The position numbers were made by a program, and so were the translations under genes. Shown here piece by piece: positions 15,265-62,429 of a stretch of 64,000 nucleotides of DNA; position 1 is the first letter of the stretch, and every line of letters begins with the position of its first letter. Below the pieces are notes generated by a model, which was not told the DNA's origin, did no database searches, and saw nothing but the letters and a program-made list of their open reading frames with translations. The stretch is from Ylistrum balloti (lineage: Eukaryota): positions 434,001-498,000 of the forward strand of contig NW_026782110.1 in NCBI RefSeq assembly GCF_031769215.1. The letters run 5' to 3'.

Positions 15265-16396
15265 TATAATTAAAATTTCCATCAATCGGTGCTTGTGATT
15301 AGTAAACTGTAACACAATATATATCGATACAGGTCAGTGTACAACGTCATTGAACACTAATGGTCAACGCAAATGGTCGAACACAATGTTTAACTTGTCT
15401 ATAACAATATATGCGTACATTTTTATTCAAACCACATACACGTTATTCATGTATAGAACTTGATTGAACTGGTTTTGTGAATTTTATATCATACCGGATA
15501 TTCACGTAGTTTCTATATCTCCGGTGTGTATCGAAAACACTTTTATAATTTTTACGAGCTAACGTCGAACTGGTCACGCGACACGGGTCAGAGTACATCG
15601 CTACTGTCGTATTTAAGAGTTGAACGAAAAAACAATTAAAATCAATATAAACATATGCAGTGGGTATAATTAAAGCCCTCATCGAACGGAAGTTGAGTTT
15701 AGTAGATTTTACTGTTGCACCTATTTTTCCATATCGAACTGCCGTTACTGAACACTTAAGAGCCATCAAAATGGCCGAAACACTGCCTTATATGACCTGT
15801 GCGTTGGCATGGAGCTTGACCAGATTAATGAAGTGACCTGTAAACCGGTCGGACGTTTTCATTAAACATATTTAATTAATTACTTGTGATGACGAGAAAT
15901 GTGTTGTTTTTTTAACTGTTTTAATTAGTACGAGGAAAACTTGAACGCCTTTTTGTATACGTGCATGTAAACCATTTAATTGATGTATAGCTTGACCGAA
16001 ATGCACGACTGCATGCTGTTTTAGGGGAAGAAGAGTTTCAAACTTTATATCATACATGGTATACACGTATGTAAATTTAAACGTCGACGTGCAAATTTGA
16101 TTGACAAGCTGATGCATGTGTATCAAAGTAGGGGTGGGGAGTGTATAACGATATACTGAATGTCGAAAAAGGACGACGCACGGGCCAGAGAAATTATCAT
16201 TTCGAGAGGACAATATACGATACGATGGAAAAGAAAAAGAAAGAAAAATGACTTTTGTGTCAGTGCTGGACATCGAATCCGTTTATCTGAAAGCATCGTT
16301 ACATTTACGTAATTCTATATATATCTAAATAAGAACAAAACCCAATTTCTTTGCGTATATTCGAGTGAAATGGACACTTGTTGAGAAGAAGTGGGT

Positions 16397-16412
16397 GGCT
16401 CTGAAAAGAGCC
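16397..16412 (-). terminator. Histone-type 3' stem-loop, copy 1
   Basis: Minus strand ACAAC-GGCTCTTTTCAGAGCC-ACCCA: 6-bp stem, TTTC loop, canonical flanks, 26 nt after the ORF stop. Confidence 0.88.
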
Positions 16413-16438
16413 GTTGTTAGGGTTTAGGACTGTCATCG

Positions 16439-16765
16439 TCACTCTTCATCTTCGTCTTCTGATCCCGAAACAACGTCTACAATTTCGCCATACAGGTCCT
16501 TTCGGAGTGCGGAGATGTCTTCGGCTTTTTGGTGAGCGTAGTCGTAATACATGTTTCGGAGGCCTTCGACAACCGACATTCGAAGTCTGTAACTGTAGCG
16601 AAATGTGCGTAGTCCGTGTCTCTTGGCGCCGAGGTAACGAGACTGCATGTCGTCCAGTTTGTAATTCAGTTGTACGATCTGTTCACAAGCCCTTCGGAAT
16701 CGACGTTCATTGTCGAGCAGGATGAAGCGTTGGTCAAGTGGAGAGTTTCGTGCTATGGCCTTCAT
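16439..16765 (-). CDS. 108-aa uncharacterised helical protein, copy 1
   Basis: MKAIARNSPLDQRF...FRYSYRLRMSVVEGLRNMYYDYA...SGSEDEDEE; intact; histone-type stem-loop 26 nt after the stop. The ORF track starts 3 codons earlier at a TTG. Confidence 0.7.
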   Translation of the reverse strand: MKAIARNSPLDQRFILLDNERRFRRACEQIVQLNYKLDDMQSRYLGAKRHGLRTFRYSYRLRMSVVEGLRNMYYDYAHQKAEDISALRKDLYGEIVDVVSGSEDEDEE

Positions 16766-16779
16766 GCTTTTCAAGAGTA

Positions 16780-16821
16780 TGAATGGTGAATGCAGAATGT
16801 TCGTCGGTCACCTAGATATAG
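16780..16821 (-). promoter_or_regulatory. Putative core promoter of the 108-aa gene (unit 1 shown; present in every unit): CTATATC plus three CATTC motifs
   Basis: CTATATC at 16821-16815; ACATTCT 16800-16794, GCATTCA 16793-16787, CCATTCA 16786-16780 (exact YCATTCR); ATG at 16765. Confidence 0.45.
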
Positions 16822-18199
16822 CCGAGTGTCATCTCTTGAAACGAGAAACTCGTATATACTTTTCTGACGCGTGTCATGTCCTTTTGTATATTGAGCTGAA
16901 GACAGCCCACTGATTCCTTGTATAAACACTTGTTACCGTTACGATCGAACGTCGAACGGGTCACGGACACGGGTCCGTGCACACACCCTGTAATTACGTA
17001 TATATAAGACCAGAACGAAATCAGTTGTAATTAATATAAACACTTACAGAAGGTATAATTAAAATTTCCATCAATCGGTGCTTGTGATTAGTAGAGTTTA
17101 CTGTAACACAATATATATCGATACAGGTCAGTGTACAACGTCATTGAACACTAATGGTCAACGCAAATGGTCGAACACAATGTTTAACTTGTCTATAACA
17201 ATATATGCGTACATTTTTATTCAAACCACATACACGTTATTCATGTATAGAACTTGATTGAACTGGTTTTGTGAATTTTATATCATACCGGATATTCACG
17301 TAGTTTCTATATCTCCGGTGTGTATCGAAAACACTTTTATAATTTTTACGAGCTAACGTCGAACTGGTCACGCGACACGGGTCAGAGTACATCGCTACTG
17401 TCCTTTTACGTGTATTTAAGAGTTGAACGAAAAAACAATTAAAATCAATATAAACATATGCAGTGGGTATAATTAAAGCCCTCATCGAACGGAAGTTGAG
17501 TTTAGTAGATTTTACTGTTGCACCTATTTTTCCATATCGAACTGCCGTTACTGAACACTTAAGAGCCATCAAAATGGCCGAAACACTGCCTTATATGACC
17601 TGTGCGTTGGCATGGAGCTTGACCAGATTAATGAAGTGACCTGTAAACCGGTCGGACGTTTTCATTAAACATATTTAATTAATTACTTGTGATGACGAGA
17701 AATGTGTTGTTTTTTTAACTGTTTTAATTAGTACGAGGAAAACTTGAACGCCTTTTTGTATACGTGCATGTAAACCATTTAATTGATGTATAGCTTGACC
17801 GAAATGCACGACTGCATGCTGTTTTAGGGGAAGAAGAGTTTCAAACTTTATATCATACATGGTATACACGTATGTAAATTTAAACTTGGACGTGCAAATT
17901 TGATTGACAAGCTGATGCATGTGTATCAAAGTAGGGGTGGGGAGTGTATAACGATATACTGAATGTCGAAAAAGGACGACGCACGGGCCAGAGAAATTAT
18001 CATTTCGAGAGGACAATATACGATACGATGGAAAAGAAAAAGAAAGAAAAATGACTTTTGTGTCAGTGCTGGACATCGAATCCGTTTATCTGAAAGCATC
18101 GTTACATTTACGTAATTCTATATATATCTAAATAAGAACAAAACCCAATTTCTTTGCGTATATTCGAGTGAAATGGACACTTGTTGAGAAGAAGTGGGT

Positions 18200-18215
18200 G
18201 GCTCTGAAAAGAGCC
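18200..18215 (-). terminator. Histone-type 3' stem-loop, copy 2
   Basis: Identical to copy 1. Confidence 0.88.
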
Positions 18216-18241
18216 GTTGTTAGGGTTTAGGACTGTCATCG

Positions 18242-18568
18242 TCACTCTTCATCTTCGTCTTCTGATCCCGAAACAACGTCTACAATTTCGCCATACAGGT
18301 CCTTTCGGAGTGCGGAGATGTCTTCGGCTTTTTGGTGAGCGTAGTCGTAATACATGTTTCGGAGGCCTTCGACAACCGACATTCGAAGTCTGTAACTGTA
18401 GCGAAATGTGCGTAGTCCGTGTCTCTTGGCGCCGAGGTAACGAGACTGCATGTCGTCCAGTTTGTAATTCAGTTGTACGATCTGTTCACAAGCCCTTCGG
18501 AATCGACGTTCATTGTCGAGCAGGATGAAGCGTTGGTCAAGTGGAGAGTTTCGTGCTATGGCCTTCAT
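18242..18568 (-). CDS. 108-aa protein, copy 2
   Basis: Protein identical to copy 1. Confidence 0.7.
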   Translation of the reverse strand: MKAIARNSPLDQRFILLDNERRFRRACEQIVQLNYKLDDMQSRYLGAKRHGLRTFRYSYRLRMSVVEGLRNMYYDYAHQKAEDISALRKDLYGEIVDVVSGSEDEDEE

Positions 18569-20002
18569 GCTTTTCAAGAGTATGAATGGTGAATGCAGAA
18601 TGTTCGTCGGTCACCTAGATATAGCCGAGTGTCATCTCTTGAAACGAGAAACTCGTATATACTTTTCTGACGCGTGTCATGTCCTTTTGTATATTGAGCT
18701 GAAGACAGCCCACTGATTCCTTGTATAAACACTTGTTACCGTTACGATCGAACGTCGAACGGGTCACGGACACGGGTCCGTGCACACACCCTGTAATTAC
18801 GTATATATAAGACCAGAACGAAATCAGTTGTAATTAATATAAACACTTACAGAAGGTATAATTAAAATTTCCATCAATCGGTGCTTGTGATTAGTAGAGT
18901 TTACTGTAACACAATATATATCGATACAGGTCAGTGTACAACGTCATTGAACACTAATGGTCAACGCAAATGGTCGAACACAATGTTTAACTTGTCTATA
19001 ACAATATATGCGTACATTTTTATTCAAACCACATACACGTTATTCATGTATAGAACTTGATTGAACTGGTTTTGTGAATTTTATATCATACCGGATATTC
19101 ACGTAGTTTCTATATCTCCGGTGTGTATCGAAAACACTTTTATAATTTTTACGAGCTAACGTCGAACTGGTCACGCGACACGGGTCAGAGTACATCGCTA
19201 CTGTCCTTTTACGTGTATTTAAGAGTTGAACGAAAAAACAATTAAAATCAATATAAACATATGCAGTGGGTATAATTAAAGCCCTCATCGAACGGAAGTT
19301 GAGTTTAGTAGATTTTACTGTTGCACCTATTTTTCCATATCGAACTGCCGTTACTGAACACTTAAGAGCCATCAAAATGGCCGAAACACTGCCTTATATG
19401 ACCTGTGCGTTGGCATGGAGCTTGACCAGATTAATGAAGTGACCTGTAAACCGGTCGGACGTTTTCATTAAACATATTTAATTAATTACTTGTGATGACG
19501 AGAAATGTGTTGTTTTTTTAACTGTTTTAATTAGTACGAGGAAAACTTGAACGCCTTTTTGTATACGTGCATGTAAACCATTTAATTGATGTATAGCTTG
19601 ACCGAAATGCACGACTGCATGCTGTTTTAGGGGAAGAAGAGTTTCAAACTTTATATCATACATGGTATACACGTATGTAAATTTAAACGTCGACGTGCAA
19701 ATTTGATTGACAAGCTGATGCATGTGTATCAAAGTAGGGGTGGGGAGTGTATAACGATATACTGAATGTCGAAAAAGGACGACGCACGGGCCAGAGAAAT
19801 TATCATTTCGAGAGGACAATATACGATACGATGGAAAAGAAAAAGAAAGAAAAATGACTTTTGTGTCAGTGCTGGACATCGAATCCGTTTATCTGAAAGC
19901 ATCGTTACATTTACGTAATTCTATATATATCTAAATAAGAACAAAACCCAATTTCTTTGCGTATATTCGAGTGAAATGGACACTTGTTGAGAAGAAGTGG
20001 GT

Positions 20003-20018
20003 GGCTCTGAAAAGAGCC
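20003..20018 (-). terminator. Histone-type 3' stem-loop, copy 3
   Basis: Identical to copy 1. Confidence 0.88.
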
Positions 20019-20044
20019 GTTGTTAGGGTTTAGGACTGTCATCG

Positions 20045-20371
20045 TCACTCTTCATCTTCGTCTTCTGATCCCGAAACAACGTCTACAATTTCGCCATACA
20101 GGTCCTTTCGGAGTGCGGAGATGTCTTCGGCTTTTTGGTGAGCGTAGTCGTAATACATGTTTCGGAGGCCTTCGACAACCGACATTCGAAGTCTGTAACT
20201 GTAGCGAAATGTGCGTAGTCCGTGTCTCTTGGCGCCGAGGTAACGAGACTGCATGTCGTCCAGTTTGTAATTCAGTTGTACGATCTGTTCACAAGCCCTT
20301 CGGAATCGACGTTCATTGTCGAGCAGGATGAAGCGTTGGTCAAGTGGAGAGTTTCGTGCTATGGCCTTCAT
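20045..20371 (-). CDS. 108-aa protein, copy 3
   Basis: Protein identical to copy 1. Confidence 0.7.
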   Translation of the reverse strand: MKAIARNSPLDQRFILLDNERRFRRACEQIVQLNYKLDDMQSRYLGAKRHGLRTFRYSYRLRMSVVEGLRNMYYDYAHQKAEDISALRKDLYGEIVDVVSGSEDEDEE

Positions 20372-21805
20372 GCTTTTCAAGAGTATGAATGGTGAATGCA
20401 GAATGTTCGTCGGTCACCTAGATATAGCCGAGTGTCATCTCTTGAAACGAGAAACTCGTATATACTTTTCTGACGCGTGTCATGTCCTTTTGTATATTGA
20501 GCTGAAGACAGCCCACTGATTCCTTGTATAAACACTTGTTACCGTTACGATCGAACGTCGAACGGGTCACGGACACGGGTCCGTGCACACACCCTGTAAT
20601 TACGTATATATAAGACCAGAACGAAATCAGTTGTAATTAATATAAACACTTACAGAAGGTATAATTAAAATTTCCATCAATCGGTGCTTGTGATTAGTAG
20701 AGTTTACTGTAACACAATATATATCGATACAGGTCAGTGTACAACGTCATTGAACACTAATGGTCAACGCAAATGGTCGAACACAATGTTTAACTTGTCT
20801 ATAACAATATATGCGTACATTTTTATTCAAACCACATACACGTTATTCATGTATAGAACTTGATTGAACTGGTTTTGTGAATTTTATATCATACCGGATA
20901 TTCACGTAGTTTCTATATCTCCGGTGTGTATCGAAAACACTTTTATAATTTTTACGAGCTAACGTCGAACTGGTCACGCGACACGGGTCAGAGTACATCG
21001 CTACTGTCCTTTTACGTGTATTTAAGAGTTGAACGAAAAAACAATTAAAATCAATATAAACATATGCAGTGGGTATAATTAAAGCCCTCATCGAACGGAA
21101 GTTGAGTTTAGTAGATTTTACTGTTGCACCTATTTTTCCATATCGAACTGCCGTTACTGAACACTTAAGAGCCATCAAAATGGCCGAAACACTGCCTTAT
21201 ATGACCTGTGCGTTGGCATGGAGCTTGACCAGATTAATGAAGTGACCTGTAAACCGGTCGGACGTTTTCATTAAACATATTTAATTAATTACTTGTGATG
21301 ACGAGAAATGTGTTGTTTTTTTAACTGTTTTAATTAGTACGAGGAAAACTTGAACGCCTTTTTGTATACGTGCATGTAAACCATTTAATTGATGTATAGC
21401 TTGACCGAAATGCACGACTGCATGCTGTTTTAGGGGAAGAAGAGTTTCAAACTTTATATCATACATGGTATACACGTATGTAAATTTAAACTTGGACGTG
21501 CAAATTTGATTGACAAGCTGATGCATGTGTATCAAAGTAGGGGTGGGGAGTGTATAACGATATACTGAATGTCGAAAAAGGACGACGCACGGGCCAGAGA
21601 AATTATCATTTCGAGAGGACAATATACGATACGATGGAAAAGAAAAAGAAAGAAAAATGACTTTTGTGTCAGTGCTGGACATCGAATCCGTTTATCTGAA
21701 AGCATCGTTACATTTACGTAATTCTATATATATCTAAATAAGAACAAAACCCAATTTCTTTGCGTATATTCGAGTGAAATGGACACTTGTTGAGAAGAAG
21801 TGGGT

Positions 21806-21821
21806 GGCTCTGAAAAGAGCC
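21806..21821 (-). terminator. Histone-type 3' stem-loop, copy 4
   Basis: Identical to copy 1. Confidence 0.88.
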
Positions 21822-21847
21822 GTTGTTAGGGTTTAGGACTGTCATCG

Positions 21848-22174
21848 TCACTCTTCATCTTCGTCTTCTGATCCCGAAACAACGTCTACAATTTCGCCAT
21901 ACAGGTCCTTTCGGAGTGCGGAGATGTCTTCGGCTTTTTGGTGAGCGTAGTCGTAATACATGTTTCGGAGGCCTTCGACAACCGACATTCGAAGTCTGTA
22001 ACTGTAGCGAAATGTGCGTAGTCCGTGTCTCTTGGCGCCGAGGTAACGAGACTGCATGTCGTCCAGTTTGTAATTCAGTTGTACGATCTGTTCACAAGCC
22101 CTTCGGAATCGACGTTCATTGTCGAGCAGGATGAAGCGTTGGTCAAGTGGAGAGTTTCGTGCTATGGCCTTCAT
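21848..22174 (-). CDS. 108-aa protein, copy 4
   Basis: Protein identical to copy 1. Confidence 0.7.
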   Translation of the reverse strand: MKAIARNSPLDQRFILLDNERRFRRACEQIVQLNYKLDDMQSRYLGAKRHGLRTFRYSYRLRMSVVEGLRNMYYDYAHQKAEDISALRKDLYGEIVDVVSGSEDEDEE

Positions 22175-23608
22175 GCTTTTCAAGAGTATGAATGGTGAAT
22201 GCAGAATGTTCGTCGGTCACCTAGATATAGCCGAGTGTCATCTCTTGAAACGAGAAACTCGTATATACTTTTCTGACGCGTGTCATGTCCTTTTGTATAT
22301 TGAGCTGAAGACAGCCCACTGATTCCTTGTATAAACACTTGTTACCGTTACGATCGAACGTCGAACGGGTCACGGACACGGGTCCGTGCACACACCCTGT
22401 AATTACGTATATATAAGACCAGAACGAAATCAGTTGTAATTAATATAAACACTTACAGAAGGTATAATTAAAATTTCCATCAATCGGTGCTTGTGATTAG
22501 TAGAGTTTACTGTAACACAATATATATCGATACAGGTCAGTGTACAACGTCATTGAACACTAATGGTCAACGCAAATGGTCGAACACAATGTTTAACTTG
22601 TCTATAACAATATATGCGTACATTTTTATTCAAACCACATACACGTTATTCATGTATAGAACTTGATTGAACTGGTTTTGTGAATTTTATATCATACCGG
22701 ATATTCACGTAGTTTCTATATCTCCGGTGTGTATCGAAAACACTTTTATAATTTTTACGAGCTAACGTCGAACTGGTCACGCGACACGGGTCAGAGTACA
22801 TCGCTACTGTCCTTTTACGTGTATTTAAGAGTTGAACGAAAAAACAATTAAAATCAATATAAACATATGCAGTGGGTATAATTAAAGCCCTCATCGAACG
22901 GAAGTTGAGTTTAGTAGATTTTACTGTTGCACCTATTTTTCCATATCGAACTGCCGTTACTGAACACTTAAGAGCCATCAAAATGGCCGAAACACTGCCT
23001 TATATGACCTGTGCGTTGGCATGGAGCTTGACCAGATTAATGAAGTGACCTGTAAACCGGTCGGACGTTTTCATTAAACATATTTAATTAATTACTTGTG
23101 ATGACGAGAAATGTGTTGTTTTTTTAACTGTTTTAATTAGTACGAGGAAAACTTGAACGCCTTTTTGTATACGTGCATGTAAACCATTTAATTGATGTAT
23201 AGCTTGACCGAAATGCACGACTGCATGCTGTTTTAGGGGAAGAAGAGTTTCAAACTTTATATCATACATGGTATACACGTATGTAAATTTAAACTTGGAC
23301 GTGCAAATTTGATTGACAAGCTGATGCATGTGTATCAAAGTAGGGGTGGGGAGTGTATAACGATATACTGAATGTCGAAAAAGGACGACGCACGGGCCAG
23401 AGAAATTATCATTTCGAGAGGACAATATACGATACGATGGAAAAGAAAAAGAAAGAAAAATGACTTTTGTGTCAGTGCTGGACATCGAATCCGTTTATCT
23501 GAAAGCATCGTTACATTTACGTAATTCTATATATATCTAAATAAGAACAAAACCCAATTTCTTTGCGTATATTCGAGTGAAATGGACACTTGTTGAGAAG
23601 AAGTGGGT

Positions 23609-23624
23609 GGCTCTGAAAAGAGCC
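23609..23624 (-). terminator. Histone-type 3' stem-loop, copy 5
   Basis: Identical to copy 1. Confidence 0.88.
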
Positions 23625-23650
23625 GTTGTTAGGGTTTAGGACTGTCATCG

Positions 23651-25411: not shown

Positions 25412-25427
25412 GGCTCTGAAAAGAGCC
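25412..25427 (-). terminator. Histone-type 3' stem-loop, copy 6
   Basis: Identical to copy 1. Confidence 0.88.
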
Positions 25428-25453
25428 GTTGTTAGGGTTTAGGACTGTCATCG

Positions 25454-43468: not shown

Positions 43469-43494
43469 GTTGTTAGGGTTTAGGACTGTCATCG

Positions 43495-43821
43495 TCACTC
43501 TTCATCTTCGTCTTCTGATCCCGAAACAACGTCTACAATTTCGCCATACAGGTCCTTTCGGAGTGCGGAGATGTCTTCGGCTTTTTGGTGAGCGTAGTCG
43601 TAATACATGTTTCGGAGGCCTTCGACAACCGACAATCGAAGTCTGTAACTGTAGCGAAAAGTGCGTAGTCCGTCTCTCTTGGCGCCGAGGTAACGAGACT
43701 GCATGTCGTCCAGTTTGTAATTCAGTTGTACGATCTGTTCACAAGCCCTTCGGAATCGACGTTCATTGTCGAGCAGGACGAAGCGTTGGTGAAGTGGAGA
43801 GTTTCGTGCTATGACCTTCAT
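43495..43821 (-). CDS. 108-aa protein, copy 16
   Basis: Same protein as copy 12. Confidence 0.7.
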   Translation of the reverse strand: MKVIARNSPLHQRFVLLDNERRFRRACEQIVQLNYKLDDMQSRYLGAKRDGLRTFRYSYRLRLSVVEGLRNMYYDYAHQKAEDISALRKDLYGEIVDVVSGSEDEDEE

Positions 43822-44117
43822 GCTTTTTTTTCAAGAGTATGAATGGTGAATGCAGAATGTTCGTCGGTCACCTAGATATAGCCGAGTGTCATCTCTTGAA
43901 ACGAGAAACTCGTACACACGGATATACACATTCTGACGCGTGTCATGTCATTTTGTATATTGAGCTGAAGGCAGCCCACTGATTCCTTGTATAAACACTT
44001 GTTACCGTTACGATCGAACGTCGAACGGGTCGCGGACACGGGTCCGTGCACACACCTGTAAACACGAATGTATAGGACCAGAACGAAATCAATTAATAAT
44101 ATAAACACGTACAGAAG

Positions 44118-44705
44118 TTATCATTAAAATTTCCATCAATCGGTGCTTGTGATTTGTTTACTGTAACACAATATATATCGCTACAGGTCAGTGTATCACG
44201 TCATTGAACATTATTGGTCATACGCAAATGGTCGAACACATTGTATAACTTGTATATAACAATATGCGTACATTTTTATTCAAACCACATACACGTTATT
44301 GATGTATATAACTTGATCGAACTGGTTTTGTGAATTTTATATCATACCGGATATACACGTAGTTTCTATATCTCCGGCGTGTATGGAAAACACGTTTATA
44401 ATTTTTACGAGTTCACGTCGAACTGGTCACGCGACACGGGTCAGAGCATATCGCTACTGTCCTTTTACGTGTATTTAAGAGTTGAACGAAAAAGCAATTA
44501 AAATCATTATAAACATATGCAGTGGGTATAATTATTAAAGCCCTCATCGAACGGAAGTTGAGTTTAGTAGACTTTACTGTTGCACCTATTTTTCCATATC
44601 GAACTGCCGTTACTGAACACTTAAGAGCACACAAAACCTGTAAACAATATGCCTTATATGACCTGTCACATACACGTTGGCAAGCTTATAATTAATTAAC
44701 TACGT
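44118..44705. repeat. Partial array unit ending in a scrambled junction
   Basis: ORF spacing 43495 to 45876 is 2,381 bp = 1,806 + 575; this unit lacks the 108-aa gene. Confidence 0.85.
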
Positions 44706-45833
44706 TTATCATTAAAATTTCCATCAATCGGTGCTTGTGATTTGTTTATAACACAATATATATCGCTACAGGTCAGTGTATCACGTCATTATTGGTCATA
44801 CGCAAATGGTCGAACACATTGTATAACTTGTATATAACAATATGCGTACATTTTTATTCAAACCACATACACGTTATTGATGTATATAACTTGATCGAAC
44901 TGGTTTTGTGAATTTTATATCATACCGGATATACACGTAGTTTCTATATCTCCGGCGTGTATGGAAAACACGTTTATAATTTTTACGAGTTCACGTCGAA
45001 CTGGTCACGCGACACGGGTCAGAGCATATCGCTACTGTCCTTTTACGTGTATTTAAGAGTTGAACGAAAAAGCAATTAAAATCATTATAAACATATGCAG
45101 TGGGTATAATTATTAAAGCCCTCATCGAACGGAAGTTGAGTTTAGTAGACTTTACTGTTGCACCTATTTTTCCATATCGAACTGCCGTTACTGAACACTT
45201 AAGAGCCATCAAAATGGCCGAAACACTGCCTTATATGACCTGTGCGTTGGCATGGAGCTTGACCAGAATAATGAAGTGACCTGTAAACCGGTCGGACGTT
45301 TTCATTAAACATATTTAATCAATTACTTGTGATGACGAGAAATGTGTTGTTTTTAAACTGTTTTAATTAGTACTAGGAAAACTTGAACGCCTTTTTGTAT
45401 ACGTGCATGTAAACCATTTAATTGATGTTTTGCTTGACCGAAATGCACGACTGCATGCTGTTTTAGGGGAAGAAGAGTTTCAAACTTTATATCATACATG
45501 GTATACACGTATGTAAATTTAAACGTCGACGTGCAAATTTGATTGACAAGCTGATGCATGTGTATCAAAGTAGGGGTTGGGAGTGTATAACGATATACTG
45601 AATGTCGAAAAAGGACGACGCACGGGCCAGAGAAATTATCGTTTCGAGAGGACAATATACGATAGAAAAGAAAAAGAAAGAAAAATGCCTTTTGTGTCAG
45701 TGCTGGACATCGAATCCGTTTATCTGAAAGCATCGTTACGTTTACGTAATTCTATATATATCTAAATAAGAACAAAACCCAATTTCTTTGCGTATATTCG
45801 AGTGAAATGGACACTTGTTGAGAAGAAGTGGGT

Positions 45834-45849
45834 GGCTCTGAAAAGAGCC
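45834..45849 (-). terminator. Histone-type 3' stem-loop, copy 17
   Basis: Identical to copy 1. Confidence 0.88.
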
Positions 45850-51269: not shown

Positions 51270-51295
51270 GTTGTTAGGGTTTAGGACTGTCATCG

Positions 51296-53060: not shown

Positions 53061-53076
53061 GGCTCTGAAAAGAGCC
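53061..53076 (-). terminator. Histone-type 3' stem-loop, copy 21
   Basis: Identical to copy 1. Confidence 0.88.
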
Positions 53077-53102
53077 GTTGTTAGGGTTTAGGACTGTCAT
53101 CG

Positions 53103-53423
53103 TCACTCTTCATCTTCGTCTTCTGATCCCGAAACAACGTCTACAATTTCGCCATACAGGTCCTTTCGGAGTGCGGAGATGTCTTCGGCTTTTTGGTGAG
53201 CGTAGTCGTAATACATGTTTCGGAGGCCTTCGACAACCGACATTCGAAGTCTGTAACTGTAGCGAAATGTGCGTAGTCCGTTGGCGCCGAGGTAACGAGA
53301 CTGCATGTCGTCCAGTTTGTAATTCAGTTGTACGATCTGTTCACAAGCCCTTCGGAATCGACGTTCATTGTCGAGCAGGACGAAGCGTTGGTCAAGTGGA
53401 GAGTTTCGTGCTATGACCTTCAT
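53103..53423 (-). CDS. 106-aa variant, copy 21
   Basis: In-frame 6-bp deletion (tgtctc lost at ~53280; AKRHG becomes ANG). Confidence 0.68.
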   Translation of the reverse strand: MKVIARNSPLDQRFVLLDNERRFRRACEQIVQLNYKLDDMQSRYLGANGLRTFRYSYRLRMSVVEGLRNMYYDYAHQKAEDISALRKDLYGEIVDVVSGSEDEDEE

Positions 53424-54859: not shown

Positions 54860-54875
54860 GGCTCTGAAAAGAGCC
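54860..54875 (-). terminator. Histone-type 3' stem-loop, copy 22
   Basis: Identical to copy 1. Confidence 0.88.
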
Positions 54876-54901
54876 GTTGTTAGGGTTTAGGACTGTCATC
54901 G

Positions 54902-55228
54902 TCACTCTTCATCTTCGTCTTCTGATCCCGAAACAACGTCTACAATTTCGCCATACAGGTCCTTTCGGAGTGCGGAGATGTCTTCGGCTTTTTGGTGAGC
55001 GTAGTCGTAATACATGTTTCGGAGGCCTTCGACAACCGACATTCGAAGTCTGTAACTGTAGCGAAAAGTGCGTAGTCCGTGTCTCTTGGCGCCGAGATAA
55101 CGAGACTGCATGTCGTCCAGTTTGTAATTCAGTTGTACGATCTGTTCACAAGCCCTTCGGAATCGACGTTCATTGTCGAGCAGGACGAAGCGTTGGTGAA
55201 GTGGAGAGTTTCGTGCTATGGCCTTCAT
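54902..55228 (-). CDS. 108-aa protein, copy 22
   Basis: Same protein as copy 8. Confidence 0.7.
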   Translation of the reverse strand: MKAIARNSPLHQRFVLLDNERRFRRACEQIVQLNYKLDDMQSRYLGAKRHGLRTFRYSYRLRMSVVEGLRNMYYDYAHQKAEDISALRKDLYGEIVDVVSGSEDEDEE

Positions 55229-56658
55229 GCTTTTCAAGAGTATGAATGGTGAATGCAGAATGTTCGTCGGTCACCTAGATATAGCCGAGTGTCATCTCTT
55301 GAAACGAGAAACTCGTACACACGGATATACACATTCTGACGCGTGTCATGTCATTTTGTATATTCAGCTGAAGGCAGCCCACTGATTCCTTGTATAAACA
55401 CTTGTTACCGTTACGATCGAACGTCGAACGGGTCGCGGACACGGGTCCGTGCACACACCTGTAATTACGAATGTATAGGACCAGAACGAAATCAATTATA
55501 ATTAATATAAACACGTACAGAAGTTATCATTAAAATGTCCATCAATCGGTGCTTGTGATTTGTTTACTGTAACACAATATATATCGCTACAGGTCAGTGT
55601 ATCACGTCATTGAACATTATTGGTCATACGCAAATGGTCGAACACATTGTATAACTTGTATATAACAATATGCGTACATTTTTATTCAAACCACATACAC
55701 GTTATTGATGTATATAACTTGATCGAACTGGTTTTGTGAATTTTATATCATACCGGATATACACGTAGTTTCTATATCTCCGGCGTGTATGGAAAACACT
55801 TTTATAATTTTGACGAGCTAACGTCGAACTGGTCACGCGACACGGGTCAGAGCATATCGCTACTGTCCTTTTACGTGTATTTAAGAGTTGAACGAAAAAG
55901 CAATTAAAATCATTATAAACATATGCAGTGGGTATCATTAAAGCCCTCATCGAACGGAAGTTGAGTTTAGTAGACTTTACTGTTGCACCTATTTTTCCAT
56001 ATCGAACTGCCGTTACTGAACACTTAAGAGCCATCAAAATGGCCGAAACACTGCCTTATATGACCTGTGCGTTGGCATGGAGCTTGACCAGAATAATGAA
56101 GTGACCTGTAAACCGGTCGGACGTTTTCATGAAACATATTTAATCAATTACTTGTGATGACGAGAAATGTGTTGTTTTTTAACTGTTTTAATTAGTACTA
56201 GGAAAACTTGAACGCCTTTTTGTATACGTGCATGTAAACCATTTAATTGATGTTTTGCTTGACCGAAATGCACGACTGCATGCTGTTTTAGGGGAAGAAG
56301 AGTTTCAAACTTTATATCATACATGGTATACACGTATGTAAATTTAAACGTCGACGTGCAAATTTGATTGACAAGCTGATGCATGTGTATCAAAGTAGGG
56401 GTTGGGAGTGTATAACGATATACTGAATGTCGAAAAAGGACGACGCACGGGCCAGAGAAATTATCGTTTCGAGAGGACAATATACGATAGAAAAGAAAAA
56501 GAAAGAAAAATGCCTTTTGTGTCAGTGCTGGACATCGAATCCGTTTATCTGAAAGCATCGTTACATTTACGTAATTCTATATATATCTAAATAAGAACAA
56601 AACCCAATTTCTTTGCGTATATTCGAGTGAAATGGACACTTGTTGAGAAGAAGTGGGT

Positions 56659-56674
56659 GGCTCTGAAAAGAGCC
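56659..56674 (-). terminator. Histone-type 3' stem-loop, copy 23
   Basis: Identical to copy 1. Confidence 0.88.
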
Positions 56675-56700
56675 GTTGTTAGGGTTTAGGACTGTCATCG

Positions 56701-57027
56701 TCACTCTTCATCTTCGTCTTCTGATCCCGAAACAACGTCTACAATTTCGCCATACAGGTCCTTTCGGAGTGCGGAGATGTCTTCGGCTTTTTGGTGAGCG
56801 TAGTCGTAATACATGTTTCGGAGGCCTTCGACAACCGACATTCGAAGTCTGTAACTGTAGCGAAATGTTCGTAGTCCGTGTCTCTTGGCGCCGAGATAAC
56901 GAGACTGCATGTCGTCCAGTTTGTAATTCAGTTGTACGATCTGTTCACAAGCCCTTCGGAATCGACGTTCATTGTCGAGCAGGACGAAGCGTTGGTGAAG
57001 TGGAGAGTTTCGTGCTATGGCCTTCAT
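56701..57027 (-). CDS. 108-aa protein, copy 23
   Basis: Same protein as copy 8; synonymous changes only. Confidence 0.7.
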   Translation of the reverse strand: MKAIARNSPLHQRFVLLDNERRFRRACEQIVQLNYKLDDMQSRYLGAKRHGLRTFRYSYRLRMSVVEGLRNMYYDYAHQKAEDISALRKDLYGEIVDVVSGSEDEDEE

Positions 57028-58460
57028 GCTTTTCAAGAGTATGAATGGTGAATGCAGAATGTTCGTCGGTCACCTAGATATAGCCGAGTGTCATCTCTTG
57101 AAACGAGAAACTCGTACACACGGATATACACATTCTGACGCGTGTCATGTCATTTTGTATATTCAGCTGAAGGCAGTCCACTGATTCCTTCTATAAACAC
57201 TTGTTACCGTTACGATCGAACGTCGAACGGGTCGCGGACACGGGTCCGTGTACACACCTGTAATTACGAATGTATAGGACCAGAACGAAATCAATGATAA
57301 TTAATATAAACACGTACAGAAGTTATCATTAAAATGTCCATCAATCGGTGCTTGTGATTTGTTTACTGTAACACAATATATATCGCTACAGGTCAGTGTA
57401 TCACGTCATTGAACATTATTGGTCATACGCAAATGGTCGAACACATTGTATAACTTGTATATAACAATATGCGTACATTTTTATTCAAACCACATACACG
57501 TTATTGATGTATATAACTTGATCGAACTGGTTTTGTGAATATTCTATCATACCGGATGTACACGTAGTTTCTATATCTCCGGCGTGTATGGAAAACACTT
57601 TTATAATTTTGACGAGCTAACGTCGAACTGGTCACGCGACACGGGTCAGAGCATATCGCTACTGTCCTTTTACGTGTATTTAAGAGTTGAACGAAAAAGC
57701 AATTAAAATCATTATAAACATATGCAGTGGGTATAATTATTAAAGCCCTCATCGAACGGAAGTTGAGTTTAGTAGACTTTATTGTTGCACCTATTGTTCC
57801 ATATCGAACTGCCGTTACTGAACACTTAAGAGCCATCAAAATGGCCGAAACACTGCCTTATATGACCTGTGCGTTGGCATGGAGCTTGACCAGAATAATG
57901 AAGTGCCCTGTAAACCGGTCGGACGTTTTCATGAAACATATTTAATCAATTAATTGTGATGACGAGAAATGTGTTGTTTTTTAACTGTTTTAATTAGTAC
58001 TAGGAAAACTTGAACGCCTTTTTGTATATGTGCATGTAAACCATTTAATTGATGTATTGCTTGACCGAAATGCACGACTGCATGCTATTTTAGGGGAAGA
58101 AGAGTTTCAAACTTTATATCATACATGGTATACACGTATGTAAATTTAAACGTCGACGTGCAAATTTGATTGACAAGCTGATGCATGTGTATCAAAGAAG
58201 GGGTGGAGAGTGTATAACGATATACTGAATGTCGAAAAAGGACGACGCACGGGCCAGAGAAATTATCGTTTCGAGAGGACAATATACGATAGAAAAGAAA
58301 AAGAAAGAAAAATGCCTTTTGTATCAGTGCTGGACATCGAATCCGTTTATCTGAAAGCATCGTTACGTTTACGTAATTCTATATATATCTAAATAAGAAC
58401 AAAACCCAATTTCTTTGCGTATATTCGAGTGAAATGGACACTTGTTGAGAAGAAGTGGGT

Positions 58461-58476
58461 GGCTCTGAAAAGAGCC
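58461..58476 (-). terminator. Histone-type 3' stem-loop, copy 24
   Basis: Identical to copy 1. Confidence 0.88.
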
Positions 58477-58502
58477 GTTGTTAGGGTTTAGGACTGTCAT
58501 CG

Positions 58503-58829
58503 TCACTCTTCATCTTCGTCTTCTGATCCCGAAACAACGTCTACAATTTCGCCATACAGGTCCTTTCGGAGTGCGGAGATGTCTTCGGCTTTTTGGTGAG
58601 CGTAGTCGTAATACATGTTTCGGAGGCCTTCGACAACCGACATTCGAAGTCTGTAACTGTAGCGAAATGTTCGTAGTCCGTGTCTCTTGGCGCCGAGATA
58701 ACGAGACTGCATGTCGTCCAGTTTGTAATTCAGTTGTACGATCTGTTCACAAGCCCTTCGGAATCGACGTTCATTGTCGAGCAGGACGAAGCGTTGGTGA
58801 AGTGGAGAGTTTCGTGCTATGACCTTCAT
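58503..58829 (-). CDS. 108-aa protein, copy 24
   Basis: Same protein as copy 9. Confidence 0.7.
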   Translation of the reverse strand: MKVIARNSPLHQRFVLLDNERRFRRACEQIVQLNYKLDDMQSRYLGAKRHGLRTFRYSYRLRMSVVEGLRNMYYDYAHQKAEDISALRKDLYGEIVDVVSGSEDEDEE

Positions 58830-60273
58830 GCTTTTTTTTTTCAAGAGTATGAATGGTGAATGCAGAATGTTCGTCGGTCACCTAGATATAGCCGAGTGTC
58901 ATCTCTTGAAACGAGAAACTCGTACACACGGATATACACATTCTGACGCGTGTCATGTCATTTTGTATATTGAGCTGAAGGCAGCCCACTGATTCCTTGT
59001 ATAAACACTTGTTACCGTTACGATCGAACGTCGAACGGGTCGCGGACACGGGTCCGTGCACACACCTGTACACACGAATGTATAGGACCAGAACGAAATC
59101 AATTATAATTAATATAAACACGTACAGAAGTTATCATTAAAATTTCCATCAATCGGTGCTTGTGATTTGTTTACTGTAACACAATATATATCGCTACAGG
59201 TCAGTGTATCACGTCATTGAACATTATTGGTCATACGCAAATGGTCGAACACATTGTATAACTTGTATATAACAATATGCGTACATTTTTATTCAAACCA
59301 CATACACGTTATTGATGTATATAACTTGATCGAACTGGTTTTGTGAATTTTATATCATACCGGATATACACGTAGTTTCTATATCTCCGGCGTGTATGGA
59401 AAACACGTTTATAATTTTTACGAGTTAACGTCGAACTGGTCACGCGACACGGGTCAGAGCATATCGCTACTGTCCTTTTACGTGTATTTAAGAGTTGAAC
59501 GAAAAACGTATTAAAATCAATATAAAGATATGCAGTGGGTATAATTATTAAAGCCCTCATCGAACGGAAGTTGAGTTTAGTAGACTTTACTGTTGCACCT
59601 ATTTTTCCATATCGAACTGCCGTTACTGAACACTTAAGAGCCATCAAAATGGCCGAAACACTGCCTTATATGACCTGTGCGTTGGCATGGAGCTTGACCA
59701 GAATAATGAAGTGACCTGTAAACCGGTCGGACGTTTTCATTAAACATATTTAATCAATTAATTGTGATGACGAGAAATGTGTTGTTTTTAAACTGTTTTA
59801 ATTAGTACTAGGAAAACTTGAACGCCTTTTTGTATACGTGCATGTAAACCATTTAATTGATGTTTTGCTTGACCGAAATGCACGACTGCATGCTGTTTTA
59901 GGGGAAGAAGAGTTTCAAACTTTATATCATACATTGTATACACGTATGTAAATTTAAACGTCGACGTGCAAATTTGATTGACAAGCTGATGCATGTGTAT
60001 CAAAGTAGGGGTTGGGAGTGTATAACGATATACTGAATGTCGAAAAAGGACGACGCACGGGCCAGAGAAATTATCATTTCGAGAGGACAATATACGATAC
60101 GATGGAAAAGAAAAAGAAAGAAAAATGCCTTTTGTGTCAGTGCTGGACATCGAATCCGTTTATCTGAAAGCATCGTTACGTTTACGTAATTCTATATATA
60201 TCTAAATAAGAAGAAAACCCAATTTCTTTGCGTATATTCGAGTGAAATGGACACTTGTTGAGAAGAAGTGGGT

Positions 60274-60289
60274 GGCTCTGAAAAGAGCC
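60274..60289 (-). terminator. Histone-type 3' stem-loop, copy 25
   Basis: Identical to copy 1. Confidence 0.88.
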
Positions 60290-60315
60290 GTTGTTAGGGT
60301 TTAGGACTGTCATCG

Positions 60316-60642
60316 TCACTCTTCATCTTCGTCTTCTGATCCCGAAACAACGTCTACAATTTCGCCATACAGGTCCTTTCGGAGTGCGGAGATGTCTTCG
60401 GCTTTTTGGTGAGCGTAGTCGTAATACATGTTTCGGAGGCCTTCGACAACCGACATTCGAAGTCTGTAACTGTAGCGAAATGTGCGTAGTCCGTGTCTCT
60501 TGGCGCCGAGGTAACGAGACTGCATGTCGTCCAGTTTGTAATTCAGTTGTACGATCTGTTCACAAGCCCTTCGGAATCGACGTTCATTGTCGAGCAGGAT
60601 GAAGCGTTGGTCAAGTGGAGAGTTTCGTGCTATGGCCTTCAT
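60316..60642 (-). CDS. 108-aa protein, copy 25
   Basis: Protein identical to copies 1-7. Confidence 0.7.
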   Translation of the reverse strand: MKAIARNSPLDQRFILLDNERRFRRACEQIVQLNYKLDDMQSRYLGAKRHGLRTFRYSYRLRMSVVEGLRNMYYDYAHQKAEDISALRKDLYGEIVDVVSGSEDEDEE

Positions 60643-62060
60643 GCTTTTCAAGAGTATGAATGGTGAATGCAGAATGTTCGTCGGTCACCTAGATATAGCC
60701 GAGTGTCATCTCTTGAAACGAGAAACTCGTATATACTTTTCTGACGCGTGTCATGTCATTTTGTATATTGAGCTGAAGACAGCCCACTGATTCCTTGTAT
60801 AAACACTTGGTACCGTTACGATCGAACGTCGAACGGGTCACGGACACGGGTCCGTGCACACACCCTGTAATTACGTATATATAAGACCAGAACGAAATCA
60901 GTTATAATTAATATAAACACTTACAGAAGGTATAATTAAAATTTCCATCAATCGGTGCTTGTGATTAGTAGAGTTTACTGTAACACAATATATATCGATA
61001 CAGGTCAGTGTACAACGTCATTGAACACTAATGGTCAACGCAAATGGTCGAACACAATGTTTAACTTGTCTATAACAATATATGCGTACATTTTTATTCA
61101 AACCACATACACGTTATTCATGTATAGAACTTGATCGAACTGGTTTTGTGAATTTTATATCATACCGGATATACACGTAGCTTCTATATCTCCGGCGTGT
61201 ATGGAAAACACGTTTATAATTTTTACGAGCTAACGTCGAACTGGTCACGCGACATGGGTCAGAGCATATCGCTACTGTCCTTTTACGTGTATTTAAGAGT
61301 TGAACGAAAAAACAATTAAAATCAATATAAACATATGCAGTGGGTATAATTAAAGCCCTCATCGAACGGAAGTTGAGTTTAGTAGATTTTACTGTTGCAC
61401 CTATTTTTCCATATCGAACTGCCGTTACTGAACACTTAAGAGCCATCAAAATGGCCGAAACACTGCCTTATATGACCTGTGCGTTGGCATGGAGCTTGAC
61501 CAGAATAATGAAGTGACCTGTAAACCGGTCGGACGTTTTCATTGAACACATTTTATCAGTTACTTGTGATGACGAGAAATGTGTTGTTTTTTTAACTGTT
61601 TTAATTAGTACGGGGAAAACTTGAACGCCTTTTTGTATACGTGCATGTAAACCATTTAATTGATGTATAGCTTGACCTTTTAGGGGCAGAAGAGTTTCAA
61701 ACTTTATATCATACATGGTATACACGTATGTAAATTTAAACGTCGACGTGCAAATTTGATTGACAAGCTAATGCATGTGTATCAAAGTAGGGGTGGGGAG
61801 TGTATAACGATATACTGAATGTCGAAAAAGGACGACGCACGGGCCAGAGAAATTATGAGAAATTATCATTTCGAGAGGACAATATACGATAGAAAAGAAA
61901 AAGAAAGAAAAATGCCTTTTGTGTCAGTGCTGGACATCGAATCCGTTTATCTGAAAGCATCGTTACATTTACGTAATTCTATATATATCTAAATAAGAAG
62001 AAAACCCAATTTCTTTGCGTATATTCGAGTGAAATGGACACTTGTTGAGAAGAAGTGGGT

Positions 62061-62076
62061 GGCTCTGAAAAGAGCC
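62061..62076 (-). terminator. Histone-type 3' stem-loop, copy 26
   Basis: Identical to copy 1. Confidence 0.88.
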
Positions 62077-62102
62077 GTTGTTAGGGTTTAGGACTGTCAT
62101 CG

Positions 62103-62429
62103 TCACTCTTCATCTTCGTCTTCTGATCCCGAAACAACGTCTACAATTTCGCCATACAGGTCCTTTCGGAGTGCGGAGATGTCTTCGGCTTTTTGGTGAG
62201 CGTAGTCGTAATACATGTTTCGGAGGCCTTCGACAACCGACATTCGAAGTCTGTAACTGTAGCGAAATGATCGTAGTCCGTGTCTCTTGGCGCCGAGGTA
62301 ACGAGACTGCATGTCGTCCAGTTTGTAATTCAGTAGTACGATCTGTTCACAAGCCCTTCGGAATCGACGTTCATTGTCGAGCAGGACGAAGCGTTGGTCA
62401 AGTGGAGAGTTTCGTGCTATGGCCTTCAT
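62103..62429 (-). CDS. 108-aa protein, copy 26
   Basis: Intact; private IVLLN and LRSF changes. Confidence 0.68.
   Translation of the reverse strand: MKAIARNSPLDQRFVLLDNERRFRRACEQIVLLNYKLDDMQSRYLGAKRHGLRSFRYSYRLRMSVVEGLRNMYYDYAHQKAEDISALRKDLYGEIVDVVSGSEDEDEE

Follow-up and report, generated by a model that had tools for sequence, protein, structure and literature searches.

A tandem array of a small non-histone gene with histone-type stem-loops after its stop codons in a scallop-like bivalve, and its conservation in related bivalves

Organization of the array

The hairpin found at the 3' end of replication-dependent histone messages is otherwise known only from those messages, and the locus described here raises the question of whether a gene that does not encode a histone can make use of the same signal. 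The window analysed was a 64,000-nucleotide stretch of Ylistrum balloti DNA (GCF_031769215.1, contig NW_026782110.1, positions 434,001 to 498,000). An earlier note, made from the sequence alone, had proposed that it contains a non-histone gene amplified 26 times in tandem and ending in a canonical histone stem-loop. This observation was confirmed. The exact 16-mer GGCTCTTTTCAGAGCC occurs 26 times in the window, always on the minus strand and with a period of about 1803 nt, except for one unit of 2381 nt, whereas dinucleotide-preserving shuffles gave 0 matches. All 26 copies were hit by the Rfam Histone3 model (RF00032) with 36.7 bits, above the gathering score of 34. The extent of the array was determined by blastn of one unit against the window, which revealed that it covers 47.6 kb in head-to-tail orientation, beyond the span given in the note (16392-62429). 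The main features are as follows:

15257-62838, minus strand: whole tandem array, with 26 complete units of about 1.8 kb plus a truncated spacer at the low-coordinate end.
16413-18215, minus strand: one representative repeat unit (1803 nt), running on this strand from spacer to promoter, CDS and then 3' UTR up to the next stem-loop.
16439-16765, minus strand: CDS of the lowest-coordinate copy (108 aa plus stop); the other 25 copies sit at the same offset in their units, and the highest runs 62103-62429.
53103-53423, minus strand: the single 106-aa copy, with an in-frame 6-nt deletion that removes two residues around K48-H50.
16413-16438, minus strand: 26-nt C/A-rich 3' UTR linker between the stop codon and the stem-loop, identical in all 26 units.
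16397-16412, minus strand: histone-type stem-loop (stem GGCTCT/AGAGCC, loop TTTC), the first of 26; the last is at 62061-62076.
16392-16396, minus strand: ACCCA 3' flank; the predicted cleavage site, inferred from established histone pre-mRNA processing, lies after the final A.
16344-16579, minus strand: 236-nt block without variable sites among 25 units.

In every unit the stop codon is followed by the same linker, CGATGACAGTCCTAAACCCTAACAAC, then by the stem-loop with its CAAC and ACCCA flanks. The positions of the first copy were as indicated in the note. However, the ORF, which the note gave as 108 aa, has this length in 25 units only, the remaining one being of 106 aa, and there are 7 protein variants. 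All 26 ORFs are intact and uninterrupted.

The invariant stretch was also larger than noted. It comprises the last 141 nt of the CDS, the linker, the stem-loop and 53 nt downstream, and no site in it varies among the 25 complete units, whereas 10.3% of the columns vary in the spacer. Under a simple independent-sites estimate, the chance of such a run at the spacer rate is about 3e-11. Tandem arrays homogenise, and identity among the 26 copies does not prove selection by itself. In addition, the few CDS differences within the array are mostly non-synonymous (about 7 against 3).

The encoded protein is predicted to be a two-helix hairpin

In order to test whether the protein is simply a very divergent histone, in which case the stem-loop would be where it belongs, its sequence and predicted structure were analysed. 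The 327-nt CDS encodes a 12.9-kDa protein with a pI of about 9.8 and an acidic SGSEDEDEE tail. This protein is small and has a basic core, its gene is intronless and tandemly arrayed, and its best, although non-significant, structural neighbours are chromatin proteins (the ING4 N-terminal domain and the LSD1 tower). Nevertheless, the AlphaFold2 model (mean pLDDT 88.6) consists of two antiparallel helices of roughly 40 residues, and not of the short-long-short three helices of the histone fold. No hit was obtained in Pfam at E<=10, neither the sequence nor the profile hit any histone in the PDB, and no histone chain is among the top 50 Foldseek PDB matches listed, none of which is significant (best E 0.66). 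This makes the divergent-histone reading very unlikely.

The protein belongs to a large family (978 clusters), in which every named member is a mollusc. No viral relative was found, and no transposase or terminal repeats were seen in the unit. Hence, of the two origins considered in the note, host innovation fits better than a selfish or viral element.

Conservation of the stem-loop in other bivalves

To find out whether the stem-loop had been captured only once, orthologues of the gene were searched for and the region after their stop codons was inspected. Orthologues with 43-90% identity, from other pectinids, Pinctada, mytilids, two unidentified metagenome loci and Dreissena, all keep a stem-loop with a 6-bp stem and a 4-nt loop 18-58 nt after the stop codon, several of them in tandem repeats. 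Six stem-loops (37.6-40.2 bits) were found in Pinctada imbricata, 3 of them behind intact 115-aa ORFs, and 9 in Mytilus edulis at about 1.28 kb spacing, 7 of them behind ORFs of 111-122 aa. Stem-loops were also present in other mytilid contigs (32-33 bits), in two pectinid contigs, in the loci designated L018, L019 and L022, and, as the variant GGTCCTTGTAAGGACC, in Dreissena polymorpha. Those of mytilids, L018, L022 and Dreissena fall below the Rfam gathering score, at 33, 27, 23 and 19 bits, respectively.

The pattern of change fits an RNA read by SLBP. In the alignment 98.6% of cells are paired, and the second G-C pair, the top U-A pair and loop U1 and U3 are invariant in 12 of 12 sequences. 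Stem changes are U.G wobbles or double compensatory changes (C-G to U-A, U-A to C-G), and only loop positions 2 and 4 vary, which are the tolerant positions according to established SLBP biochemistry. The covariation controls were not extreme, since 26 of 500 shuffles reached the observed values, because only Dreissena supplies double changes.

These data also bear on the possibility that the element works at the DNA level, as a recombination, replication or protein-binding site that maintains the array, or as a transcription terminator. The 16-mer is a near-perfect DNA palindrome and a second imperfect palindrome (TTTTCTCGAAAAG-type) follows it in several species. However, the U.G wobble pairs of Mytilus (GGTTCT/AGAGCC) and of locus L016 (GGCTCT/AGGGCC) keep RNA pairing on the sense strand only and break the DNA palindrome. 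Moreover, the element is always on the sense strand 18-58 nt after the stop codon, including in Dreissena, where the repeat unit is 4.7 kb and holds another ORF, and RNAalifold found no consensus second hairpin. A DNA-level role is therefore regarded as very improbable.

Between species, dN/dS is 0.04-0.2, indicating that the coding sequence is under purifying selection. The orphan Mizuhopecten copy shows relaxed constraint (dN/dS 0.19, against 0.04 for the other pectinid) and also has a broken first stem pair, suggesting coupled decay. An alternative is that the array is an essentially neutral satellite, in which an ORF was captured into a former histone repeat and the stem-loop is an inert relic copied along by unequal crossing-over and gene conversion. 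The homogenisation of tandem arrays, the mostly non-synonymous differences within this one and the frameshifts in several Pinctada edge copies are in line with this view. Against it, the linkage of ORF and stem-loop is kept between bivalve lineages whose synonymous sites are saturated, the coding sequence is constrained, the stem keeps pairing through wobble and compensatory changes, invariance is confined to the 3' half of the gene plus the processing signals while the spacer varies, and promoter motifs are shared across orders. This alternative is considered improbable.

The stem-loop is a property of part of the family, not of all of it. More distant homologues in Magallana gigas, Ostrea and Littorina, and other Dreissena paralogues, lack it, and the protein evidently works without it.

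Candidate downstream element, poly(A) signals and promoter

The downstream and upstream regions were compared among species. The following elements were located in the first unit:

16372-16382, minus strand: candidate histone downstream element, AACAAGTGTCC in this species and TCGAAAAGTGTCC-type in relatives, with a purine core that starts about 14-15 nt after the stem.
16815-16820, minus strand: TATA-like box (TATATC within GGCTATATCTAGG), about 50 nt upstream of the ATG.
16843-16852, minus strand: promoter-proximal element CGAGTTTCTC, shared with Pinctada and L018.

A purine-rich box (GAAAAGT, AAAAAGA or GAAAGAT) is conserved 12-15 nt after the stem, where a histone downstream element would be. 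Its assignment rests on position and conservation only, and its function is inferred. In the window the box (AACAAGTG) is less purine-rich than in relatives. TATA boxes are present in Pinctada (CTGTATAAAAG) and Mytilus (GCTATATAACC), and the promoter-proximal element has the form CGAGTATCTC in L016 and GACGTTTCTC in Mytilus, although this promoter-proximal element was recognized by eye, without a statistical test.

No AATAAA or ATTAAA occurs for about 400 nt downstream of the stem-loop. ATTAAA motifs lie 400-520 nt after it and AATAAA at about 970 nt. It is possible, although rather unlikely, that the stem-loop is a functional RNA element but not the end of the mRNA, with transcripts that read through and are polyadenylated further downstream. 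In that case it might act as an internal SLBP-binding 3' UTR element controlling translation or stability, or the gene might have dual 3' ends used in different tissues. SLBP-dependent polyadenylated maternal histone mRNAs are reported in Drosophila (PMC11997800). Mytilus H1 'orphon' genes are reported to carry a polyadenylation signal (PMC6210712), so that a dual 3' end in other tissues cannot be excluded. Paralogues without the stem-loop presumably use poly(A), and one of them, in locus L005, is followed by an encoded A27 tract. On the other hand, the box conserved at a fixed +14 nt and the ACCCA flank are what cleavage needs, not what binding alone needs, and conservation drops to spacer level after the 53 invariant nt that follow the stem-loop.

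Proposed processing of the transcripts

Taken together, the computational tests proposed in the note that could be run came out in favour of its interpretation. The array is best explained as a multi-copy, protein-coding host gene family, in which each 1.8-kb unit is an independent, intronless transcription unit with a TATA promoter and a short 5' UTR. We infer, from genomic and metagenomic DNA and without RNA evidence, that its pre-mRNA is probably processed like a replication-dependent histone pre-mRNA: SLBP would bind the 16-nt stem-loop, U7 snRNP would pair with the purine-rich box about 14 nt downstream of the stem, and cleavage after ACCCA would leave a non-polyadenylated mRNA of roughly 0.4 kb ending in the stem-loop. 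That would tie the synthesis of the protein to SLBP availability, meaning S phase and/or the maternal store of eggs and cleavage embryos, and the 26-fold tandem amplification would supply the bulk output, as in histone arrays. As for the function of the protein, our guess is a chromatin- or nucleic-acid-associated dimerising hairpin. The stem-loop was probably acquired early in bivalve evolution by one branch of a family known so far only from molluscs, and has been kept by selection since then. As related bivalves keep the same arrangement, this looks like an ancient co-option of the histone mRNA 3'-end pathway by a non-histone gene, and an old, selected exception to the "histones only" rule, of which we found no published description.

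Comparison with known systems

The closest structural look-alikes of the predicted protein are the ING4 N-terminal dimerisation domain, the LSD1 tower and ROP or ESCRT-III/Vipp1 hairpins, which are antiparallel two-helix hairpins of similar length (TM 0.68-0.73, rmsd 1-2.5 A). However, all E-values exceed 0.6 and identity is 9-16%, which corresponds to a generic fold with no evidence of homology.

Members of the protein's own family, such as Magallana gigas K1PRP6, Littorina saxatilis XP_070194631, Dreissena DPMN_062929 and Mactra antiquata KAL4222745, share the same domain of roughly 90 residues with the invariant motif ERRFRRACEQI...FRY...RNMYYDYA, often have an acidic tail and are often clustered or tandem, but these homologues have no histone stem-loop. 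The oyster gene is single-copy and convergent with GRIM-19, the Littorina gene sits inside an intron of an Ank/CAP-Gly gene, and in the Ostrea protein the domain is the C-terminus of a SWIM-finger protein.

The Mytilus H1 'orphon' genes (PMC6210712) and the SLBP-dependent polyadenylated maternal histone mRNAs of Drosophila (PMC11997800) show that stem-loop-type and poly(A)-type 3' ends can both occur among such genes, and that their usage can depend on tissue or stage. Those are still histones, and in the array no poly(A) signal lies within 400 nt of the stem-loop.

With replication-dependent histone genes and their tandem arrays, for example sea-urchin early histone repeats and bivalve histone clusters, the locus shares small intronless genes in head-to-tail arrays, each with its own TATA promoter, a short 3' UTR, a 16-nt stem-loop with an A-rich 5' flank and an ACCCA 3' flank, a purine-rich element at a fixed distance downstream and the absence of a nearby poly(A) signal. 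Human SLBP CLIP is reported to recover no genuine non-histone target (PMC4604434). In contrast to those arrays, the unit described here holds a single gene, not a quintet or quartet, and its product is not H1, H2A, H2B, H3 or H4 and has no histone fold in the predicted structure.

Organisation of the array units

The 16-mer GGCTCTTTTCAGAGCC was found 26 times in the window, always on the minus strand, with a period of about 1803 nt except for one unit of 2381 nt, whereas dinucleotide-preserving shuffles gave none. All 26 copies were reported by the Rfam Histone3 model (RF00032) at 36.7 bits, above the curated gathering score of 34, and they were the only Rfam hits in the window. Reading of the minus strand and a scripted analysis over all units gave the same layout in every case, namely an ORF, a stop codon, the identical 26-nt linker CGATGACAGTCCTAAACCCTAACAAC, the stem-loop and ACCCA. 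This confirms the observation made in the earlier note, which had placed the first copy at 16412-16392 and whose coordinates were right. Three points were corrected. The note had given the ORF as 108 aa, but one of the 26 ORFs (53103-53423) is 106 aa because of an in-frame 6-nt deletion, the other 25 being 108 aa, and there are seven protein variants. The note had placed the array at 16392-62429, whereas array homology runs from 15257 to 62838. Finally, the invariant zone is larger than the stem-loop.

Among the 25 complete units, the spacer has 10.3% variable columns (pi 0.024), the promoter 5.3% and the CDS 4% (pi 0.0115), whereas the 3' UTR, the stem-loop and the first 53 nt downstream have none. 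The longest invariant run is 236 nt and comprises the last 141 nt of the CDS, the linker, the stem-loop and 53 nt downstream. At the spacer rate it has a probability of about 3e-11 under a simple independent-sites estimate. Within-array CDS differences are mostly non-synonymous and lie in the N-terminal two-thirds of the protein. Protein variants are arranged in blocks (16439-62429), with the A3/D11/I15 type at 16-27 kb and 60 kb and the V3/H11/V15 types in the middle (30-53 kb), which fits local homogenisation within the array.

Each unit has a TATA-like box about 50 nt upstream of the ATG. A promoter element, CGAGTTTCTC (16843-16852 on the minus strand), lies about 25-40 nt upstream of the TATA box in the window, in Pinctada and in the unidentified locus L018, with GACGTTTCTC in Mytilus. 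The pectinid contig L016 has CGAGTATCTC and Mytilus has GACGTTTCTCAAT. In the window the element reads AGTTTCTCGTTTC, which loosely resembles an IRF/ISRE-type site, and the pectinid sequences (window, L016) also share TGACACGCGTCAGAA. These promoter motifs were read by eye, without a statistical test. The ORF is uninterrupted, although an intron in the 5' UTR cannot be excluded. No AATAAA or ATTAAA lies within about 400 nt after the stem-loop; the first ATTAAA is about 400 nt and the first AATAAA about 970 nt after it.

In order to assess a viral or transposable element origin, relatives were searched for in IMG/VR and the unit was analysed for terminal repeats and additional ORFs. No relative was found in IMG/VR. 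The unit has no inverted repeats and only an internal direct sub-repeat of about 410 bp. The only other long ORF of the spacer (133 aa) is intact in only 7 of 26 units and broken in 19, and a second gene in the spacer was therefore rejected. A viral or transposable element origin is thus not supported. The features noted in the spacer and in the flank of the array were the following:

16939-17109 vs 17346-17523 (every unit): diverged internal direct sub-repeat of about 410 bp, whose promoter-proximal copy carries the real promoter region.
43469-45849: the one long unit (2381 nt), with an extra copy of this sub-repeat.
8556-14864, minus strand: intact 2102-aa gag-pol ORF of a BEL/Pao LTR retrotransposon (Pfam Peptidase_A17 at 1e-43, DUF5641), a separate insertion directly next to the low-coordinate end of the array, where array homology stops at 15257; it may have truncated a 27th unit.
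2344-2742, plus strand: 132-aa ORF with the zf-RVT domain, which is the C-terminal tail of a LINE reverse transcriptase, probably a fragment.
3563-3807, 4916-5051, 5869-6046, 6424-7027: cluster of simple repeats and minisatellites (a TGA run, a 47-nt unit x2.9, a 45-nt unit x4 and a 27-nt unit x22) in the AT-rich flank.

Predicted structure of the encoded protein

The 108-aa protein has no Pfam match even at E<=10, and it has no sequence or profile match in the PDB. AlphaFold2, run with a 35-sequence alignment, gave a confident model (mean pLDDT 88.6, pTM 0.72) with two long antiparallel helices (residues 9-50 and 53-92) followed by a disordered acidic tail, which is not the three-helix (short-long-short) histone fold. 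The helical core is basic (pI about 9.8) and the tail is SGSEDEDEE. Foldseek found only generic hairpins (the ING4 dimerisation domain, the LSD1 tower, ROP, and Vipp1/ESCRT-III), all with E>0.6 and 9-16% identity, and no histone chain was among the top matches. The AlphaFold DB matches with E below about 0.01 were unnamed or uncharacterised proteins at 23-80% identity, evidently family members. With regard to function, the language-model atlas and the AlphaFold DB clusters gave nothing useful, since only uncharacterised mollusc proteins and generic hairpins were returned. The predicted fold and all sequence and profile searches argue against a divergent histone, and this explanation was therefore rejected.

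The protein family and purifying selection

A word-indexed search found 94 relatives, of which the named ones are Mizuhopecten yessoensis (80% identity), Pinctada imbricata and Mytilus edulis. A profile search of 1.84 billion cluster representatives found 978 clusters at E<=1e-3 and 530 at E<=1e-10. Every named member is a mollusc: Ostrea edulis, Magallana gigas (K1PRP6), Dreissena polymorpha (with several clusters), Mactra antiquata, and the gastropods Nucella lapillus and Littorina saxatilis. The motif ERRFRRACEQI...FRY...RNMYYDYA is nearly invariant. Between species, the CDS is under purifying selection.

Table. dN/dS of the CDS between species.
Comparison: dN/dS
Window vs pectinid contig L016: 0.04
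Within mytilids: 0.06-0.07
L016 vs Mizuhopecten L001: 0.09
Deeper comparisons where dS is not saturated: about 0.2

Conservation of the stem-loop in orthologues

One important question is whether the stem-loop represents a one-off capture. It does not, and this is the main new result. Wherever DNA downstream of an orthologue (43-90% identity) was available, a 6-bp/4-nt stem-loop follows the stop codon by 18-58 nt.

Table. Stem-loops downstream of orthologues.
Source: stem-loop; context
Pectinid contigs L016, L017: GGCTCT TTTC AGGGCC (L016), GGCTCT TTTC AGAGCC (L017); in L016, two copies 1569 nt apart
Pinctada imbricata L002: as in the window, 37.6-40.2 bits; six stem-loops at 1.27-1.36 kb spacing (one 2.7-kb gap), three behind intact 115-aa ORFs, the later copies being frameshifted
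Mytilus edulis L003: GGTTCT TTTC AGAGCC; nine stem-loops at about 1.28 kb spacing, seven behind ORFs of 111-122 aa
Other mytilid contigs L007-L015, L020, L021: as Mytilus edulis, L020 scoring 32-33 bits (E about 5e-6); several contigs show the start of a next repeat unit
Unidentified L018, L019: loop TCTC; L019 shows stem-loop-to-gene spacing of about 1.4 kb
Unidentified L022: loop TTTA
Dreissena polymorpha L004: GGTCCT TGTA AGGACC; two copies 4.7 kb apart

Whereas the Pinctada orthologues score above the Rfam cut-off, other orthologues fall below it (mytilids 32-33, L018 27, L022 23 and Dreissena 19 bits). In the mytilid contig L020 two modules, each a stem-loop plus downstream box, lie 255 nt apart (653 and 908) behind a single gene. 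The ACCCA flank present in all 26 units of the window is replaced by ACACA, AAACA or AATCA in relatives and by GCATA in Dreissena.

On the 12-sequence alignment, 98.6% of stem cells are paired. Three pairs never vary, two pairs show changes on both sides (C-G to U-A and U-A to C-G, both in Dreissena), and four sequences have U.G wobbles. The shuffle control was only moderately extreme, with 26 of 500 shuffles reaching the observed values, because the double changes come from one lineage. RNAalifold recovered exactly this hairpin as the only consensus structure. The invariant columns (12 of 12 sequences) are the second G-C pair, the C-G and U-A pairs at the top of the stem, and loop positions 1 and 3, and only loop positions 2 and 4 change. 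To judge from SLBP biochemistry and structure, these would be the contacted and the tolerant positions, respectively. The A-rich 5' flank, which would also be contacted, is present in the window and is conserved in at least 90% of the 12 sequences, L022 being different. The U.G wobbles keep the RNA hairpin on the sense strand while breaking the DNA palindrome, which argues for an RNA-level function.

A candidate histone downstream element

A purine-rich box (GAAAAGT, AAAAAGA or GAAAGAT; the TCGAAAAGTGTCC or AACAAGTGTCC box) sits 12-15 nt after the stem in every lineage. Apart from the stem-loop, it is the only conserved stretch in otherwise unalignable flanks. Its fixed spacing is in keeping with what the U7 'molecular ruler' would require, and it may be regarded as a candidate histone downstream element on the basis of position and conservation only. 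A second conserved hairpin after the stem-loop, suggested by TTTTCTCGAAAAG-type palindromes, was not supported by RNAalifold, and we read this region as a pyrimidine tract plus a purine-rich box.

Table. Sequence downstream of the stem-loop.
Lineage: downstream sequence
Window: TCAACAAGTGTCC
Other pectinids: TCGAAAAGTGTCC
Pinctada: TAGAAAAGTAGCC
Mytilids: TCAAAAAGAATCT
L018: TCGAAAAGTTGC
L022: ATGAAAGTGG
Dreissena: TCGAAAGATTG

Homologues lacking the stem-loop

In Magallana gigas the homologue is a single-copy gene convergent with the last exon of GRIM-19, with no Histone3 hit even at E<=5. In Ostrea edulis (L006, protein P0106) the domain is the C-terminus of a multi-exon, 401-aa protein with a SWIM zinc finger, whose gene model overlaps an ALS2CR8-domain gene model. 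The Littorina saxatilis gene encodes 214 aa with a long acidic extension, sits inside an intron of an Ank/CAP-Gly gene and has no stem-loop. In a second Dreissena polymorpha cluster (L035, 3888-19356) a 9-kb repeat carries three different paralogues of the family (127, 112 and 108 aa), none with a histone-type stem-loop; the 108-aa gene is followed by another hairpin, GCAGACGAC-N13-GTCGTCTGC, and then by AGAAAGAA. One distant family member (L005, 8001-8390) is followed 52 nt after its stop by an encoded A27 tract and then a CA microsatellite, with retroelement integrase genes nearby; it looks like a retrocopy of a polyadenylated mRNA.

In order to decide between gain and loss of the stem-loop, a tree of 20 sequences (111 columns) was built, but it was poorly resolved, with 8 of 17 inner branches open. 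The C. gigas gene without a stem-loop falls in the same polytomy as the Pteriomorphia genes that have one, and the Ostrea domain pairs with Pinctada at 90/90 support. This hints at loss in oysters rather than separate origin, but it is not decisive. The Mizuhopecten orphan copy shows relaxed constraint and also a broken first stem pair, which is consistent with the two features being selected together. The earlier note had taken the absence of the stem-loop from distant homologues as the mark of a one-off capture. This absence was observed only for distant branches, and across scallops, pearl oysters, mussels and, in variant form, Dreissena the linkage is conserved. The interpretation of the note, that a non-histone gene has co-opted the histone mRNA pathway, is supported by independent comparative evidence, although it is not proven at the RNA level.

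Inferred processing of the mRNA

The Logan, ENA or JGI contigs that we read closely were genomic or metagenomic DNA, and transcription and processing of the mRNA are inferred. We infer that SLBP binds the stem-loop, that U7 snRNP binds the downstream box and that cleavage after ACCCA yields a roughly 0.4-kb non-polyadenylated mRNA. Its level would then follow SLBP, in S phase or in the egg and cleavage stages, and the array would supply bulk expression, as in histone repeats. We consider it probable, although not proven at the RNA level, that the mRNAs really end at the stem-loop. The main alternative is read-through to a downstream poly(A) site, with the stem-loop as an internal regulatory element, or dual ends as reported for some histone genes. 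A basic dimerising hairpin with a CK2-type acidic tail, made in step with histones, suggests a chromatin- or nucleic-acid-associated protein, but this is speculation.

A more far-reaching possibility, which we regard as unlikely but which is not excluded, is that bivalves have a genuine extra client of the histone mRNA pathway. In this case the predicted helical-hairpin protein would be transcribed from histone-like arrays, possibly inside the histone locus body, and its message would be cleaved by SLBP and U7 and made only in step with DNA replication or as a maternal store. That would make it a replication-coupled chromatin component, a new non-histone-fold partner or packager of newly made chromatin, and it would also show that the 'histones only' rule for stem-loop mRNAs is lineage-specific and not universal.

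Comparison with known histone-type mRNAs

No report of a non-histone gene with a histone stem-loop, in molluscs or elsewhere, was found in the full-text literature examined, which included a 2026 preprint on the evolution of the pathway and two papers on mollusc histone genes but not most subscription journals. The stem-loop, SLBP and U7 pathway is taught as serving one gene class only. Replication-dependent histone mRNAs have been described as the only known non-polyadenylated cellular mRNAs, and human SLBP CLIP and RIP have been reported to recover no genuine non-histone target (PMC4604434; PMC3763545). A non-histone gene family that keeps a canonical stem-loop and a downstream element, often in tandem arrays, across distantly related bivalve lineages would be a natural experiment, which could show what this 3' end buys a gene (S-phase coupling, maternal storage, or high output from arrays). 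It also offers a handle on how genes enter the pathway or the histone locus body, and it points to an uncharacterised, probably abundant, mollusc protein. The machinery is known, whereas the putative client, a non-histone gene, appears to be new.
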